Shown here in pieces: positions 57,005 to 63,916 of a stretch of DNA of 64,000 nucleotides. The notes beneath the pieces were generated by a model that was not told the DNA's origin, did no database searches, and saw nothing but the letters and a program-made list of their open reading frames with translations. Origin of the DNA: Rebecca billardiae RCC1528 (taxonomy: Eukaryota > Protista > Haptophyta); contig OZ251225.1 in NCBI GenBank assembly GCA_965240325.2, positions 3,844,001-3,908,000 on the forward strand. The letters are read 5' to 3'. Numbering within the stretch: the first letter of the stretch is position 1; each line of letters opens with the position of its first letter. The position numbers were made by a program, and so were the translations under genes.

Positions 57005-58558
57005 TCACTCTGCCGGCGGCATGTGGCGCAGGCAGTGCCCGAGCGCGCACACGAACGCGTGCACGTCGCCGAAGGAGACGTACAGCGGGCACAGGCCGAC
57101 GCGCAGCACGTGCGGCCGCCTGTAGTCGCACTCGACGCCGTGTGCGCGCGCGAGCTCGGCCTGCACCGCGGCCGCGCGGTCGGCGCCGGAGTCGGCGGGG
57201 CGCACGCGCACGGAGAGCTGCGCGCCGCGCGCGCTCGCGTCGCGCGGCGTGATCACGTCGAAGTGCCCCGCGCCCCCCTTCGGCCGCGGCAGCTCCTCCT
57301 CCAGCGCCGCGAGCAGCTCGAGCGCGTGCTCGGTCAGCCGCACCGCCTTGGCGCGCAGCCTGCCCAGCCCGGCCGCGTCAAAGAGCTCCAGGCTGCCGCG
57401 CAGCGCGGCGAGCTGGAAGATGGGCGGGTTGGAGAGCTGCCAGCCGTCCGCGCCGGGGGCGGGGACGAAGTCGGGCCCCATCCTGAACCGCGTCGCCGCG
57501 TCGTTGCCCCACCACCCCGCCATCCGCTTGGGCGCGCGCCCCGCGGCGAGCGCGTCCGCGCCGCAGTGGGTGTCGTGCACGAACGCGCCGCCGATGGCGC
57601 CCGGACCCGCTGCGCGCGCAGGGGCGGCGGCGGCGGTGCGTGAGCGCGCGCGCGAGGGAGAGGAGGGGGGCGGGAGCTGCGGCGCGCGGCGCGCGCGCGC
57701 ACCGTTGAGGTACTTGTACGAGCACCACGCGGCGAAGTCGACGCCCCACTCGTGCAGCGCGAGCGGCACGTTGCCCGCGGCGTGCGCAAGGTCCCACCCA
57801 ACCACGATGCCGCGCGCGCGCGCCGCGGCGGTGATGGCGGCGATGTCGAAGAGCTGGCCGGTGTAGTACTGCACGCCGGAGAGCAGCATCAGCGCGACGC
57901 CGCCGCCGTGCTCCTCGATCCACGCCAGGATCGCCTCCGTGCGCAGCGTCTCGCCGCCGGCCGCCTCGGGCCAGAGCTCGCGCACGGCGCCGCTGCCGTC
58001 CGCGCCGCCGTACCCGCGCAGCGCGGCGTGCGAGGTGACGGCGTAGCGGTCGGAGGGGAAGGCGCCGCCCTCGATCACGATGGCGTGCCGCGCGGCCGTC
58101 GGCGCGTAGAACGACGCCATCAGCAGGTGCAGGTTCACCGTGAGCGAGTTCATCGCCACGACCTCGTGCTCGCGCGCGCCCACGAGCCGAGCGAGGGGCG
58201 CGCGCACGCGCTCGTGGTAGGAGAGCCAGGACGGGCCGGTGAAGTGGCCGCGCTCGCCGAGGGTGGCCCACTGCACCAGCTCGTCCGCGACGAGCTGCGC
58301 CGCGCGGTCCGGCTGCAGCCCGAGCGAGTGGCCGCACAGGTACACGGGCACGCCGCGCGGGAACGCAAAGCGCGCGCGCAGGTGCGCCAGCTCGTCGGCC
58401 GCGTCGAGCTGGCGCGTGCGCTCGAGCAGCGCGCTGCCCAGCGAGGCTGATGCGCTGGAGGGTCGCGCGCGCCGCCGCGCCGCTCGCCGCAGCAGCCACA
58501 GTGCGCAGGCGCTGGCGGCGAGCAGAGTTTGGGCCACGTGCGCTCGATTCATCGTCAT
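57005..58558 (-). CDS. KYNU: Kynureninase (PLP-dependent). Exons 58558-57703 and 57609-57005
   Basis: YLCGHSLGLQP, EVVAMNSLTVNLHLLMASFY, AFPSDRYA, SGVQYYTGQ, GWDLAHAAGNV, VDFAAWCSYKYLN|AGPG (PLP Lys), GWWG, QLSNPP, RGAQLS, PLYVSFGDV. Confidence 0.96.
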   Translation of the reverse strand: MTMNRAHVAQTLLAASACALWLLRRAARRRARPSSASASLGSALLERTRQLDAADELAHLRARFAFPRGVPVYLCGHSLGLQPDRAAQLVADELVQWATLGERGHFTGPSWLSYHERVRAPLARLVGAREHEVVAMNSLTVNLHLLMASFYAPTAARHAIVIEGGAFPSDRYAVTSHAALRGYGGADGSGAVRELWPEAAGGETLRTEAILAWIEEHGGGVALMLLSGVQYYTGQLFDIAAITAAARARGIVVGWDLAHAAGNVPLALHEWGVDFAAWCSYKYLNGARARRAPQLPPPSSPSRARSRTAAAAPARAAGPGAIGGAFVHDTHCGADALAAGRAPKRMAGWWGNDAATRFRMGPDFVPAPGADGWQLSNPPIFQLAALRGSLELFDAAGLGRLRAKAVRLTEHALELLAALEEELPRPKGGAGHFDVITPRDASARGAQLSVRVRPADSGADRAAAVQAELARAHGVECDYRRPHVLRVGLCPLYVSFGDVHAFVCALGHCLRHMPPAE

Positions 58559-58703
58559 CTCTCGTGACGCCAGACGCGATGACAATGATGACGACAATGC
58601 AAGGGCCTTGGACAATGGCGTCCCACAACCTTATTGTCTGTTTATTTGCTGATGATGATCGAGCGCACTGAGACCGGCTCTGACGCACTGCAGCGCAGCC
58701 GCG

Positions 58704-61013
58704 CAGGGATGGGCGCAAGCGAATCGCCGAATTTTCAATTCGCCGAATTCGCCGAATCGGCGAACGGCGAAGGCTGGGCGCATTCGGCGAAGGTGGCGAA
58801 TGCCCCTGTACGGGAGGTCAGTCGGGTGTGCGACGCCCCCGGACTCATCACCTCAATGCAGATAGTACTAGCTACCCGGTAAGCTGGCGCATGCGGCAGC
58901 GCATGGCTGTACGGGTTGCTAGTTGACTAGCCCATTGCGCACGGCCTGACCGAACCGCTAGCGTCGTCAGTCGCCATCATCATTGCTGTTCTCACCGGAA
59001 ACAGCCTCTGGTTCGACCTCGTCATCACTCAGACTCAGTCGTCATCCTCGCTGCCCGCGAGTCACCCCGCATGGGGACGCCGGCGGCATCACTGCCGTCG
59101 CTCTCAGACGAGGTGTCGTGCGACGCCAGTGAGCTGCCCTCGTCGGCCCGCTGCTCGTCAACCTCAAGCGCGCCCAGAAGGCTGCCATCGCCTACGCTGC
59201 GGCAGAGGAGGCCGCCGGCGGCGGCGGCGGCGGCGCAGGCCCGGCGGGCGGCGGCGACCGTCGGCCTCGACTCCGACGACTCGGATCAGAGTACTCTGAG
59301 TGAGTAGACAGGCAGATAGGCTCCGCATGCACGGCAGACCGCCTGACGCGCCTGCCGTGGCGCACACAGGCCGCTGACTGTGTCACGCGGCCCTCGGTAG
59401 CCTATTGGGATGAGATATATATATTCCGCTCGGCGATGGCCAGTGATGGGCGACTACGAGGGGTCAGGGGGGGGGACGACGGCGAGGAGCGATGATCCTG
59501 GTGTTTGTCTCTGCTGCTCGATCTGATGCTGCTACAGCTTGCTGACTTTGACGCCTGCCCGTTGCATACCACGTCGTTAATATGGCGGGCCGTAGGTCCG
59601 CCCCTTGTAGTGCCCGGGAAAAAGATAAGAAAAGAAAAGAAGAAAGAAAATCGCCTCGCCAAGAAAAGAAAATCGCGCTTCGCTCACTACCGGGCGCCCT
59701 CGCAGCTCCCACTGGGGACGCTCGGCCGAAAACCATCTGGCGCCTGGCGCGGAGCGCATGGGCCGCGCGCGCCAAATCCAACGCCGGCGCGGACATCGTG
59801 CGAGGATTCCCGAGACGTATTTTCGCCCGATTCGCGTTTGCTGCCCTCGTTGTCTCGCGTGCAGGTCGAACGGGGGCTAAATCGACGCGTTTGGAGCGGT
59901 ACGCTCGGCGCGTCGACACGATCGTGCGACCTGGGGCGATCCTCGCCCGACGTGCACGTCGAAAGCTCGCACCGGCCATAGCATCATGCGCTGCGCACGA
60001 TGACCGCCTCGCGCGATCCACCGTCGCGCGTCGGGCTCGGTGCGAGAAAGCCCTCATCACGAGGCGTCTCGCGGGCGGGAAGCGCCATCGCACGCGACGC
60101 AAGATTTGGCGCGGCCTGCTGAACTCGATCGCCGGAATCCGCGCATCACCGGACTCAGTCATTGCTCGCGGTCCGGTCCCTCAGCCGAAGCCCACGTCCG
60201 GCCTGCATGGCGTCGACGGTGACCAATGCGACGGAAGCGCAGCGCCAACGGCGTACGACGCGCAGCGGACGCACCTCCCGGGTCTGTCGCCGTGGCAGCA
60301 ACCGCGTCTTCGCGAGTTGGCGACCCTCGCCGCAGCGCGACACAGACAAGCCCGTGATGCCATCCACACAGAGATGAAACGTCGAGCATGCAACATCGCC
60401 GCGCCATCCTCGTCCATGGCGCAGGCGCTGCGGGACGAGGCGGAAGTCGTCACGCCGGTGACGGATGCGCTGCGACTCGTGTGCCCGCGTGAGCAGCGCT
60501 TGCCCACTCTCGATCGCGAGTGGCACACGCTGTCGCTGTGCGCGCGCGCGCGCACAACCAACAGCTCCGCTCGTGCCGCCGAGCACGCGAGCGCCAGACC
60601 TGTCGAAGAGGCGAAGAGCGACGACCGCGTGAACGTCAACGCGCTCGTGATTCCCTCGTGGGTGTGGGCCTCGCTGATGGAGTGATGCGCATACTACTAA
60701 GAGTACAGACAGTGAGACGTGTGTACACGTCGGAGAGCCAACTTCACGTGTCACTGGTCCTTGCACTCGACTGTCCGTCACCCACGGCCACAAGCGAATG
60801 TGGAAAGCAGACGCGAACCCGCAAAGGATACATTGCGACAGCACTGGCACGGCCCGCCGACCCCCCCGCCCGCCAGGGCACAGTTTATATATAGGCGCGG
60901 AAATGTTCATCGCTACGCAGAAATTCGCCATATTCGGCGAATTCGGCGAATTCGGCGAATTCGGCGAAGAAGCGAAGGCTGCTGAGGCCATTCGGCGAAT
61001 CTGCCCATCCCTG
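58704..61013. mobile_element. Non-autonomous hAT-superfamily DNA transposon (2,310 bp)
   Basis: 11-bp TIR CAGGGATGGGC (58704-58714) / GCCCATCCCTG (61003-61013). Perfect 8-bp TSD CAGCCGCG (58696-58703, 61014-61021). Subterminal TTCG(G/C)CGAA repeats at both ends, including (ATTCGGCGA)4 at 60932-60967. No recognisable transposase ORF. Confidence 0.93.
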
Positions 61014-61137
61014 CAGCCGCGGCGCCGTCGTCGTCACCCATCGGGCTGGGGGCTCTGCCGTGCCGGTGGCGTCGGTCGACCCAGGGTGATCGATATCGAC
61101 GCGCGCCAGCCGGTGCTCTGCGCGCAAGCTGGCCGGC

Positions 61138-62388
61138 ATGGTCGACCTGAAGCGCCGCAAGTGTGATCACACCGGCTGCACCTCGCGGCCTTCCTTCAGC
61201 ATGCCGGGCGCGCGCGCCACCCGGTGCGCTACGCACAAGCTGGCCGGCATGGTCAACGTGGTGAGCCGCACGTGTGATCACGCTGGCTGCACCACGCGGC
61301 CTGCGTTCGGCATGCCGGGCGACGCGCGCGCCACCCGGTGCGCTGCGCACAAGCTGGCCGGCATGATCGACCTGCAGCACCCCAAATGTGATCACGCTGG
61401 CTGCACCGCGCGGCCGTCGTTCGGCATGCCCGGTGACGCGCGCGCCAGCCGGTGCGCTGCGCACAAGCTGGCCGGCATGGTCGACGTGGTGAGCCGCAAG
61501 TGTGATCACGCGGGCTGCACCGCGCGGCCGTCGTTCGGCATGCCCGGTGACGCGCGCGCCAGCCGGTGCGCTACGCACAAGCTGGCCGGCATGGTTGACG
61601 TGAAGACCCACAAGTGTGATCACGCCGGCTGCACCAAGTGCCCCTCATTCGGCATGCCGGGCGACGCGCGCGCCAGCCGGTGCGCTACGCACAAGCTGGC
61701 CGGCATGGTTGACGTGAAGACCCACAAGTGTGATCACGCCGGCTGCACCAAGTGCCCCTCATTCGGCATGCCGGGCGACGCGCGCGCCAGCCGGTGCGCT
61801 ACGCACAAGCTGGCCGGCATGGTTGACGTGGTGAACCGCAAGTGCGATCACACCGGCTGCACCAAGCAGCCTGCGTTCGGCATGCCAGGTGACGCGCGCG
61901 CCAGCCGGTGCGCTACGCACAAGCTGGCCGGCATGGTCAACTTGGTGAGCCGCCAGTGTGATCACGCGGGCTGCACCGCGCGGCCGTCGTTCGGCATGCC
62001 CGGTGACGCGCGCGCCAGCCGGTGCGCTACGCACAAGCTGGCCGGCATGGTTGACGTGAAGACCCACAAGTGTGATCACGCCGGCTGCACCAAGTGCCCC
62101 TCATTCGGCATGCCCGGTGACGCGCGCGCCAGCCGGTGCGCTGCGCACAAGCTGGCCGGCATGGTTGACGTGGTGAGCCGCAAGTGTGATCACGCCGGCT
62201 GCACCAAGTGCCCCTCATTCGGCATGCCGGGCGACGCGCGCGCCAGCCGGTGCGCTACGCACAAGCTGGCCGGCATGGTTGACGTGAAGAGCCGCCAGTG
62301 TGATCACGCTGGCTGCACCAAGCAGCCTGCGTTCGGCATGCCAGGTGACGCGCGCGCCAGCCGGTGCGCTACGCACAAGCTGGCCGGC
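61138..62388 (+). repeat. 114-bp coding tandem repeat x11 (first unit 111 bp)
   Basis: Near-identical units at DNA level, each ending CACAAGCTGGCCGGC. Confidence 0.97.
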
Positions 62389-62628
62389 ATGAAGCGCCTT
62401 CGGAGTGGTGCGCACAAGCGAGGGCTGGAGCAAGTCGTGAGCACCAAAGAAGTGAGCGCCGCCAAGCGACAGCGGAAGCGCACCAGCAGCACAGCCACTG
62501 CCTCGGACGTTGTAGCAGCGCGGCGGCCGCGATCGCAGCTGCCGCCACTGGTCACAGCCAGCGTCGTAACGACGCCGTCGCATGTACGACCCGTGGTGAT
62601 GGCCAGGCGGGTACGGCCTACGGCCTGA
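61138..62628 (+). CDS. EsV-1-7 cysteine-rich repeat protein: 11 tandem ~38-aa C3H zinc-finger-like repeats plus basic C-terminal tail with NLS
   Basis: Unit MV(D/N)xxxxxCDH(A/T)GCTxxP(S/A)FGMPGDARA(S/T)RCA(T/A)HKLAG matches the EsV-1-7 consensus C...GC...P.FG..G.....C..HK..GMV. Tail contains AAKRQRKR. Confidence 0.88.
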   Translation: MVDLKRRKCDHTGCTSRPSFSMPGARATRCATHKLAGMVNVVSRTCDHAGCTTRPAFGMPGDARATRCAAHKLAGMIDLQHPKCDHAGCTARPSFGMPGDARASRCAAHKLAGMVDVVSRKCDHAGCTARPSFGMPGDARASRCATHKLAGMVDVKTHKCDHAGCTKCPSFGMPGDARASRCATHKLAGMVDVKTHKCDHAGCTKCPSFGMPGDARASRCATHKLAGMVDVVNRKCDHTGCTKQPAFGMPGDARASRCATHKLAGMVNLVSRQCDHAGCTARPSFGMPGDARASRCATHKLAGMVDVKTHKCDHAGCTKCPSFGMPGDARASRCAAHKLAGMVDVVSRKCDHAGCTKCPSFGMPGDARASRCATHKLAGMVDVKSRQCDHAGCTKQPAFGMPGDARASRCATHKLAGMKRLRSGAHKRGLEQVVSTKEVSAAKRQRKRTSSTATASDVVAARRPRSQLPPLVTASVVTTPSHVRPVVMARRVRPTA

Positions 62629-63037
62629 CGAGTGACGGGCTGCGCTCGAGCACTAGTCGAGCAGCACCGTTCAACTTCATGGCGATGAGCAAGGACGGTG
62701 AGCGGCCGTCAACTCTCAGTGAGCCGATGAGTGACACGGACGAGGTTGCTGGGCCCCGCTCGCTCGCTGTGCGGCCTTGCTCCGCGGCAGCAACCAACTG
62801 GCAACCGTGCGGCTGAGTGGCGGAGTCGCGCACTCGACGAGTGACTCGACCGCAGGCGGGCCAACTCGGTCGGGGCCAAGGGCCTTGGGCGGGCGGCGCC
62901 GCATGCCCAGCTGCGTAACAACTAATTATAAAGCCGGCCTGGGCGCGGATTGGCGGAAAAGAAAGCCGGCCTGGGCAGGGCGGGCCTCTCTGGACGAGTG
63001 GACGGCTACGCGAGCCCGAGCCCGCCCGTCTCGCGCC

Positions 63038-63916
63038 ATGACGACGGCGCTGGTGATGCTCCTGAGCTCGGTGGCGCAGGTGCAGGTCGGCCGTGTCTTC
63101 CATGGCGTGATGGAGATGAACTGCCCCACGCTCGCCGGCGCGGTGTGGACCAAGACTTCCCTTCTCACCGGCGACTGCACGCTGACCGGCCGCTGGTCGT
63201 GCTCGCCGTTGTCCGGCTGGTGCCAGGGAGCGGGCTCGTACCGCGTCGGGCCGATGTCAGAGCCGCCATTTCAAGCGTTCTGCTGCTCGCCCGACCCCTT
63301 CTCGCCGCCGCCGCCCAGCCCGCCGCCGCCGCCCGCCTCGGACGCGTGCGTGTCGGACGAGTACGTGCAGAGCCCCGAGGGGCTGGTCGCGCGGCTGACG
63401 GGCAGCTGGTGCAACCCGCGGTGGGCGGGGGGACCGTACATGCCGTGCGTCGCGCATGCGACGTACTGCGCCTACCTCGGCCAGCCGGACGGCCTGGGCG
63501 GCTCGGCGTACGCGTGCGCGTGCCACCCAGGCTACGAGGCGGTGCCGAGCGCCTCCCTGGACGCGCTCCAGTGCGTGCTCTGCACCAACGGCTGGCGCCC
63601 GTCGTGGTGGGCGGCGCCAACGCGCGCGAGCCACGGCTGCGAGGCGCTGCAGGCGGAGGCACGCGCGCCGGCCGCGGCCGCGCTCGCACCGGGCAGCGCA
63701 GGCCAGCCCTCGGCGTCCGCACAGCCGCAGGGGCAGCTGCAGCCACCACCGCTGCTGCTCGTGCTGCTGCTGCTGCCGGCTTTTGCGGCGGGTGCACTCG
63801 TGGCCAGCCGCGTCGCACGCGCAGCGGGTGGCACCCGTGGCGCGCCGCCGAGCGGACCTGTGATGGGTAGCGGGTGCGAGCGAGGCACTGCTGACGCCGT
63901 GCTGGGCATGCTGTGA
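63038..63916 (+). CDS. Cell-surface Cys-rich protein: signal peptide, Cys-rich domain, SPPP linker, EGF-like domain, C-terminal TM helix
   Basis: MTTALVMLLSSVAQ; FCCSPDPFSPPPPSPPPPP; CVAHATYC...ACACHPGYE...C; LLLVLLLLPAFAAGALVA. Confidence 0.7.
   Translation: MTTALVMLLSSVAQVQVGRVFHGVMEMNCPTLAGAVWTKTSLLTGDCTLTGRWSCSPLSGWCQGAGSYRVGPMSEPPFQAFCCSPDPFSPPPPSPPPPPASDACVSDEYVQSPEGLVARLTGSWCNPRWAGGPYMPCVAHATYCAYLGQPDGLGGSAYACACHPGYEAVPSASLDALQCVLCTNGWRPSWWAAPTRASHGCEALQAEARAPAAAALAPGSAGQPSASAQPQGQLQPPPLLLVLLLLPAFAAGALVASRVARAAGGTRGAPPSGPVMGSGCERGTADAVLGML

Follow-up and report, generated by a model that had tools for sequence, protein, structure and literature searches.

An array-only EsV-1-7 zinc-finger protein in the haptophyte Rebecca billardiae is a predicted DNA binder with relatives in giant viruses that carry a nuclease-like domain

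What do long tandem arrays of EsV-1-7 zinc fingers bind, and does the variation between their units amount to a recognition code? These questions are raised by a gene in a 64,000-nucleotide stretch of the Rebecca billardiae RCC1528 genome (assembly GCA_965240325.2, contig OZ251225.1, positions 3,844,001 to 3,908,000), which we refer to as the window. The EsV-1-7 motif defines one of the largest brown-algal gene families, includes the developmental regulator IMMEDIATE UPRIGHT (IMM) and is widespread in giant viruses; the literature describes it as a possible novel zinc finger of unknown function, whose Ectocarpus members possess no other Pfam domain. A first-pass annotation of the window had proposed that the array might be a programmable nucleic-acid reader resembling transcription activator-like effectors (TALEs). 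The alga is very rich in GC (65-82%) and, judged from its sequence, the locus appears to be one of its intact nuclear genes; it belongs to a virus-associated family, the already known EsV-1-7 family, of which it is a new member. Its product is probably a nuclear DNA binder, a prediction drawn from giant-virus relatives in which the same kind of array precedes a nuclease-like domain, while much of the code-like regularity of the array is the outcome of concerted evolution and one block duplication.

The open reading frame (ORF) matches PF19114 (EsV_1_7_cys) in 11 stretches of its 496 residues (E = 2.6e-153; 497.9 bits against a cut-off of 25), in agreement with the 11 repeats read initially, and Tandem Repeats Finder (TRF) describes a period of 114 bp in 11.4 copies with 89% matches over the ORF at 61138-62628. 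Neither stops nor frameshifts interrupt the 11 units. Each unit spans 38 amino acids with the ligand pattern C9-x4-C14-x16-C31-x2-H34, which suggests that the unit binds zinc; all 44 of the 44 putative ligands are intact, and unit 1 carries a one-residue deletion that gives x15 in place of x16. The whole protein is basic, with an isoelectric point (pI) of 9.9, and its basic tail contains the KRQRKR motif, residues 443-448, that had been singled out as resembling a nuclear localization signal (NLS). Pfam searches of the window protein returned no match to zf-C2H2, SET or KRAB at E ≤ 0.01, and a sequence search against the PDB gave nothing meaningful.

The case for DNA binding comes from the relatives of these fingers. 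We searched 5.8 billion proteins and recovered 260 relatives, and 120 listed homologues were analysed in detail. Among the matches listed, identity to the query does not exceed 41% where 75% of it is aligned, or 59-61% where the alignment covers roughly half; Coccomyxa elongata, Pedinophyceae sp. YPF-701 and Effrenium voratum are among the named sources. In the ESM Atlas the window protein falls among EsV-1-7 clusters that are mostly Nucleocytoviricota where taxa are recorded. Approximately 106 of the 120 homologues continue, after the array, into a conserved C-terminal region of 190-260 residues, in which a four-Cys knuckle segment is followed by RPD...E-x-DE-x-QH...C-x-CE-x2-R...FIR-x-NPD-x-Y; residues D50, R64-P65-D66, E79, D81, E82, H85, R96, R113, N115-P116-D117 and R151 are each present in at least 96 of the 106 sequences. 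The N-terminal extra regions of other homologues contain no informative domains.

This C-terminal domain belongs to no Pfam family and no PHROG family. An AlphaFold2 model of residues 252-441 of the giant-virus protein P0004, built with 106 sequences, reached a predicted local distance difference test (pLDDT) score of 86.5 and a predicted template modelling (pTM) score of 0.82. The best rows of a Foldseek comparison of this model with the PDB are all enzymes of the PD-(D/E)XK (restriction-endonuclease) fold, among them Hjc resolvases (E 3e-3, probability 0.98), the R2 retrotransposon endonuclease, McrC and R.BspD6I. VIA-align places the catalytic domain of I-Bth0305I first (Z 8.2, root-mean-square deviation 3.3 Å, 95 of 97 residues aligned), followed by Can2, DdmD, Bax1, McrC and Hjc at Z 5-6.5. 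One Joint Genome Institute (JGI) source independently names another relative, P0026, a Vsr endonuclease; P0026 falls in a small C-terminal subcluster that is divergent and in which several of the conserved residues are missing.

The combination of array and nuclease-like domain is abundant. IMG/VR contains at least 558 loci for the domain, many of them in giant-virus metagenome-assembled genomes (MAGs), and the 80 loci that we kept (L003-L082) contain 81 nuclease-like ORFs. EsV-1-7 fingers are found in 75 of the 81, always N-terminal to the domain and mostly 5-8 in number (mode 7-8). In four other ORFs (Table 1), the domain is preceded at the same position by another type of Cys-rich repeat (CxHGxxKxxCxxCGGSxxC-like, without a Pfam match at E ≤ 0.01), which suggests that targeting modules are swapped. 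An exhaustive profile search recovered 12,593 representatives (50% identity) at E ≤ 1e-3 and 2,752 at E ≤ 1e-30; as the profile includes degenerate fingers, the lower-scoring matches may be array-only proteins. The literature searched contains no description of a family that combines the array with a nuclease-like domain and no link between EsV-1-7 and a nuclease.

Gene neighbourhoods place these proteins in giant viruses, and algal genomes also contain the longer form. P0004 adjoins a ribonucleotide reductase small subunit gene, and P0024, on a 329-kb contig (L002), adjoins the major capsid gene of a nucleocytoplasmic large DNA virus (NCLDV) together with VLTF3. The same contig contains a Hint/LAGLIDADG-type homing endonuclease ORF (L002:4031-6007) about 4 kb upstream of P0024, with the capsid gene on the opposite side; several types of selfish nuclease gene occur in this virus. 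Of the algal examples, the Pedinophyceae protein P0053 retains all of the conserved nuclease residues. The Coccomyxa elongata gene P0031 (L083:10001-12391, GCA_964261555.1) has introns, has lost the conserved nuclease residues and lies among cellular genes (transketolase-type, ETF-alpha and Arf).

Arrays placed N-terminal to a Vsr/PD-(D/E)XK-type domain reproduce the layout of modular homing endonucleases, and this is the basis on which we infer that the fingers bind DNA. An array that binds RNA, in the manner of PPR (pentatricopeptide repeat) proteins, PUF proteins or CCCH tandem zinc fingers, would agree with the CCCH ligand set and the basic protein. It is nonetheless very improbable, as the C-x4-C-x16-C-x2-H spacing is unlike the C-x8-C-x5-C-x3-H of RNA-binding fingers, the window protein has no zf-CCCH Pfam match, and the fingers are found fused to a DNA-type endonuclease fold and to a DNA transposase.

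Comparison of fingers across the family indicates which residues may do the reading. In 390 family units the core C9, C14, C31 and H34 is invariant, as are these columns in 109 aligned four-unit segments, and conservation is strong at P18, F20, K35 and across the junction G38-M1-V-D-V, and is lacking across family units at H11 of the "CDH" motif. The alphabet at the variable positions is narrow, with R, Q or I at position 17 and S, N or H at position 6, and the commonest di-residues at positions 16 and 17 are KQ, TR and KR. Positions 6 and 17 covary across the family, ranking 10th of 595 pairs at least three positions apart by mutual information with average product correction (MI-APC), which, together with the topology of the unit, is consistent with a single patch around the zinc knuckle to which the segment preceding C9 and the one following C14 both contribute.

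We counted changes per unit position between orthologous array-nuclease genes of viruses, in 12 groups at ≥85% amino acid identity, and expressed them as omega, the ratio of nonsynonymous to synonymous rates (dN/dS). The variable finger positions (5-8, 16, 17 and 19) have an omega of 0.26, compared with 0.19 for the remainder of the finger and 0.15 for the nuclease domain; nonsynonymous against synonymous changes are 0 against 5 at position 6, 6.5 against 8.5 at position 17 and 5 against 12 at position 19. Residues that differ strongly between the fingers of one protein yet are conserved between orthologues argue for a function specific to each finger, as opposed to an unconstrained surface. 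The orthologue-conserved identity of the fingers and their fusion to nucleases and a transposase thus leave nucleic-acid reading better founded than it was when first proposed.

Within the Rebecca array, the first-pass annotation had listed the di-residues after GCT (SR, TR, AR, AR, KC, KC, KQ, AR, KC, KC, KQ) and the six residues before the first Cys of each unit, and had seen that DVVSRK goes with AR in unit 4 and with KC in unit 10; each of these readings is correct to the residue. Entropy among the 11 units peaks at positions 5-8 and 16-17, takes lower values at 3, 4, 12, 19, 29 and 33, and is zero at 21 positions. When events are counted on minimum spanning trees of the codons within this array, the whole unit accumulates 24.5 nonsynonymous and 13.5 synonymous events (omega about 0.57). 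Positions 3-8 and 16-17 account for 18.5 and 2.5 of these (omega about 2.0), and the other 30 codons for 6 and 11 (omega about 0.18). Variation is therefore concentrated in the two segments, as claimed (Fisher P = 0.0013, with segments defined post hoc). The proposed dN/dS comparison bears out the contrast between segments and scaffold and falls short of diversifying selection, given that the omega of the post hoc segments is not significantly above 1 (P = 0.13). Partitioning positions by homologues instead (within-array entropy ≥ 1) gives omega values of 0.90 and 0.38, which do not differ significantly, so the data do not establish positive selection; the segments of this array are either relaxed or diversifying. 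Neutral evolution, which had been named as an observation that would count against a reader, does not describe the scaffold codons, whose low omega indicates purifying selection and argues for a working gene.

Much of the regularity that suggested a code arises at the level of DNA. Units 4-7 and 8-11 are the two copies of a single 456-bp duplication, with 17 differences in 456 nt (96.3% identity) and the fewest differences at a four-unit offset, and for this reason the series AR-KC-KC-KQ occurs twice; the 11 units are not independent of one another. Units 5 and 6 are identical in sequence. Codons 25-38 are nucleotide-identical in all units except at two nonsynonymous sites and show zero synonymous events, compared with about 13.5 in codons 1-24. 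Under an equal synonymous rate in the two half-units, the probability of this is approximately 5e-4, which indicates that codons 25-38 have been homogenized by concerted evolution beyond what protein conservation requires. The nearly invariant scaffold described at the outset is thus in part a product of selection, as its omega attests, and in part of homogenization of the DNA itself. The residue after P was likewise said to track the di-residue, and the pattern is exact (A with TR or KQ; S with SR, AR or KC). Di-residue type is linked not only to S or A at position 19, however, but also to the synonymous codons of P18 (CCT/CCG/CCC), S19 (TCC/TCG/TCA), P23 and G24, so that the tracking is linkage within DNA haplotypes. 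The shuffling between units that had been suspected is evident in two mosaics: unit 10 differs from unit 5 by four changes, all within 9 nt, that reproduce the unit-4 type (a 4-nt patch), and unit 9 is unit 5 with a 3' part of the unit-3 type. These mosaics look like short-tract gene conversion.

Comparison with relatives indicates that this homogenization is recent. The array is the second most homogeneous of the homologue set, with a mean unit identity of 0.83 against a set median of 0.64. The entropy comparison that had been suggested across the array and its relatives shows that positions variable here tend to be variable within the arrays of relatives (Spearman 0.50, P = 0.001), while relatives vary also at positions 10-12, 15, 22, 26 and 32, which are frozen in the Rebecca array. 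A decayed partial unit, in which the His ligand has become Arg, lies between an in-frame TGA and the array ATG, and represents what is left of a longer or rearranged array; apart from it, a six-frame search of the window with the unit hidden Markov model (HMM) detected no second EsV-1-7 array. In run X1, assembled into low-depth contigs without joints, the invariant 3' half-unit (62328-62385) has about 285x word depth compared with about 2x for the unique tail and flank, an excess of approximately 100-fold that is consistent with many copies of the half-unit. The X1 contigs of the half-unit have 62343 A>G and 62346 T>C fixed, and most copies in the X1 sample therefore differ from the window array at these sites.

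Such extreme homogenization of codons 25-38, the decayed unit upstream and a read depth consistent with many donor copies are also what would be expected of a functionless amplified minisatellite or young pseudogene, whose frame is kept only by conversion from functional paralogues. We consider this quite improbable. In the scaffold codons of the half that is not homogenized, synonymous changes outnumber nonsynonymous ones, every ligand is intact, and the unique basic tail with its NLS-like motif has been retained.

The same data constrain how literally a code can be understood. In a strict TALE-like code, each unit would read one base or short step through its di-residue and pre-Cys residues, units would be portable, and the sequence would suffice to predict specificity. 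The restricted family alphabet at positions 17 and 6, with few common di-residues, is what such a code would produce, as are positions that vary between fingers and are conserved between viral orthologues, viral nuclease-linked arrays of mostly 5-8 fingers, and the shuffling of units by gene conversion. We regard it as unlikely, because only five di-residue types occur here, half of the array derives from one block duplication, the omega of the variable segments is not significantly above 1 and no target is known. In addition, the variable residues extend over at least seven positions per unit, and positions 12, 15, 22, 26, 32 and 33 vary in relatives. Variability spread over so many positions is closer to the context-dependent recognition of C2H2 fingers than to a two-residue code.

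Several results weigh against the interpretation of the window protein as a DNA binder. A model of units 4-7 (109 aligned segments) reached a pLDDT of 77.7 and a pTM of 0.43, a moderate confidence; the relative orientation of units is uncertain. In each unit the model predicts strands at 2-3 and at 20-21, a bridge at position 30 and, over positions 32-34, a short helix; we take this arrangement of knuckle and helix-borne ligands to be treble-clef-like. Compared with the PDB, the four-finger model gave a best Foldseek E of 3.8 and no VIA-align hit at Z ≥ 2. The single exposed patch of variable residues is predicted from covariation and topology. A profile of the viral C-terminal domain found no meaningful sequence match in the PDB, and the resemblance of the domain to PD-(D/E)XK/Vsr-like nucleases is a moderate similarity of predicted fold (Foldseek E 3e-3, Z 8.2). 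The window protein itself lacks this domain: a nuclease-domain profile run against the window in all frames found nothing beyond the fingers, so that the argument from fusion reaches it by homology, at 41-61% finger identity. A frameshifted or intron-split nuclease fusion at this gene was considered and rejected, as no frame holds a remnant.

Small treble-clef-like fingers often mediate protein-protein contacts, and the fingers might instead dock partners as LIM, RING or B-box domains do, with the viral nuclease targeted by other means. The layout of knuckle and short-helix ligands resembles that of treble-clef fingers, LIM and PHD domains appear among the weak, non-significant Foldseek rows, and the literature searched contains no DNA-binding data for any EsV-1-7 protein, which likewise weighs against the DNA-binding interpretation. 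A protein scaffold seems to us improbable all the same, since in the 75 viral nuclease ORFs the array is the sole other recognizable module and stands where homing endonucleases carry their DNA-binding part. The array is furthermore strongly net positive, with 65 Lys and Arg residues against 30 Asp and Glu, and a Tc1/mariner transposase of Ectocarpus possesses an EsV-1-7 domain at its N-terminus (PMC12477816).

Under the DNA-binding interpretation that we prefer, each 38-residue unit would be a small CCCH zinc finger, in which the knuckle C9-x4-C14 is completed by C31-x2-H34 at a short helix, and a conserved HKLxG-M-V-D-V junction joins successive units. The array grows and changes through duplication of single units and of whole blocks and through gene conversion over short tracts, much as a coding minisatellite does. 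The 3' half of the units is thereby kept identical in DNA, and differences persist at positions 3-8 and 16-19, flanking the zinc knuckle, from which each finger may present a DNA-contact patch made of residues before C9 and after C14. The window protein would then be an array-only derivative or relative that binds without cutting, for example as a regulator or blocker.

A broader synthesis can be put forward tentatively, as a single proposal that we think doubtful as a whole. EsV-1-7 arrays might be the third class in nature of modular arrays that recognize DNA finger by finger; giant viruses might use them to target a very abundant family of Vsr-like endonucleases, as natural zinc-finger nucleases; and algae might have copied the arrays, without the nuclease, into large, fast-shuffling nuclear families that read DNA, possibly of viral or transposon origin, with the residues on either side of the zinc knuckle. 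Should the array bind specific DNA and the fusion cut it, this would explain the spread of the EsV-1-7 family, suggest a role for the expanded arrays of algae and offer a new DNA-targeting scaffold. The attachment of the arrays to an un-annotated nuclease-like domain and the constancy of their finger residues make DNA binding and cutting concretely testable.

The array gene is found in a host context (Table 1). We rejected location in a viral island, as the neighbours, a kynureninase gene at 57008-58615 (minus strand) and an ankyrin-repeat gene at 50638-52731 (plus strand), are ordinary cellular genes, and no viral insert is obvious. The kynureninase comprises Aminotran_5 and KYNU_C, and its nearest ESM Atlas clusters are almost all bacterial, which may hint at a transferred gene or may be meaningless. 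Within the approximately 250 nt 5' of the array ATG lies a perfect (ATTCGGCGA)4 microsatellite (60932-60968). On the 3' side, a plus-strand ORF at 62777-63916, without a Pfam match, probably represents a separate gene for a membrane protein; it encodes a run of prolines (PPPSPPPPP), an EGF-like stretch rich in Cys and the hydrophobic segment LLLVLLLLPAFAAGALVA. Minus-strand ORFs overlying the array were dismissed as by-products of GC-rich repeats.

Table 1 Coordinates of the array gene, its parts and upstream elements in the window, and of viral ORFs with a different Cys-rich repeat
Feature	Coordinates	Strand	Evidence
Array-only EsV-1-7 repeat protein, complete ORF, 496 aa plus stop	61138..62628	+	ORF list, translation, Pfam
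11 tandem units (unit 1, 111 nt; units 2-11, 114 nt), each starting with ATG	61138..62388	+	Repeat finder, translation, unit HMM
Units 4-7 (AR, KC, KC, KQ), first copy of the 456-bp higher-order duplicate	61477..61932	+	17 differences from units 8-11
Units 8-11 (AR, KC, KC, KQ), second copy of the 456-bp higher-order duplicate	61933..62388	+	
C-terminal tail, 79 aa, basic, low-complexity, pI 12, without nuclease domain	62389..62625	+	
KRQRKR, fits the classical monopartite NLS pattern	62464..62481	+	Pattern match
Decayed partial unit TRASRCSARKLAG, His ligand to Arg	61099..61137	+	Six-frame unit-HMM search
Possible TATA box TATATATA, about 250 nt 5' of the ATG	60886..60893	+	
Viral ORFs with a different Cys-rich repeat	L027:2251-3516, L061:2518-3516, L064:2332-3525, L072:2500-3549		

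Among known systems, the closest in kind are EsV-1 ORF7, IMM and the brown-algal family, which share with the window gene the C-x4-C-x16-C-x2-H pattern and its tandem period of about 38 residues. The brown-algal proteins likewise consist of repeats and low-complexity sequence without a further Pfam domain, and their family is, as here, expanded, often clustered and of giant-virus affinity. The window gene differs from them in its very GC-rich host, which is not a brown alga, and in having no IMM-type N-terminal domain. Its 11 units exceed those of all 120 homologues examined, in which a narrow unit model built from the query detected 3-10 units per protein, usually with a 38-residue period.

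The giant-virus array-nuclease proteins (for example P0004, P0020 and P0024) are the closest relatives of the window fingers, at 59-61% identity over about half of the query, and share their unit period and junction motif; they add a zinc-knuckle region and the RPD...E-x-DE-x-QH...NPD domain, where the window protein has its tail only. Their layout is that of I-Bth0305I, the prototype of the Vsr-like "EDxHD" family, in which modular DNA-binding motifs at the N-terminus precede a Vsr-like nuclease at the C-terminus (PMC3239194). I-Bth0305I binds DNA through NUMOD and helix-turn-helix (HTH) motifs, not through zinc fingers, the viral domain has no detectable sequence similarity to it, and the window gene, unlike I-Bth0305I, has no catalytic domain whatsoever.

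With TAL effectors the window protein shares near-identical tandem repeats, a variable di-residue and an NLS, here a pattern match. A helical repeat fold of the TALE or PPR type does not hold for the window protein: TALE repeats are metal-free helical hairpins of 33-35 residues, whereas the units here are 38-residue zinc fingers with at least two variable segments. The finger model, with short strands and one three-residue helix per unit, is not helical in the manner of TALE, PPR or PUF proteins, and the window protein has no Pfam match to PPR/PUF helical-repeat models. TAL effectors are moreover secreted bacterial effectors, which EsV-1-7 proteins are not. C2H2 arrays such as KRAB-ZNF proteins and PRDM9 resemble EsV-1-7 arrays in their tandem zinc mini-domains, conserved junction and few variable positions per finger, and in how they evolve, as coding arrays of minisatellite type and multigene clusters shaped by duplication of units and by gene conversion. 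The window array departs from them in its CCCH ligands, their spacing, a unit of 38 rather than 28 residues, and the lack of a beta-beta-alpha match and of KRAB or PR/SET domains. The TALE analogy is thus partly apt, and the logic of the EsV-1-7 array is closer to that of C2H2 arrays of the PRDM9 type.

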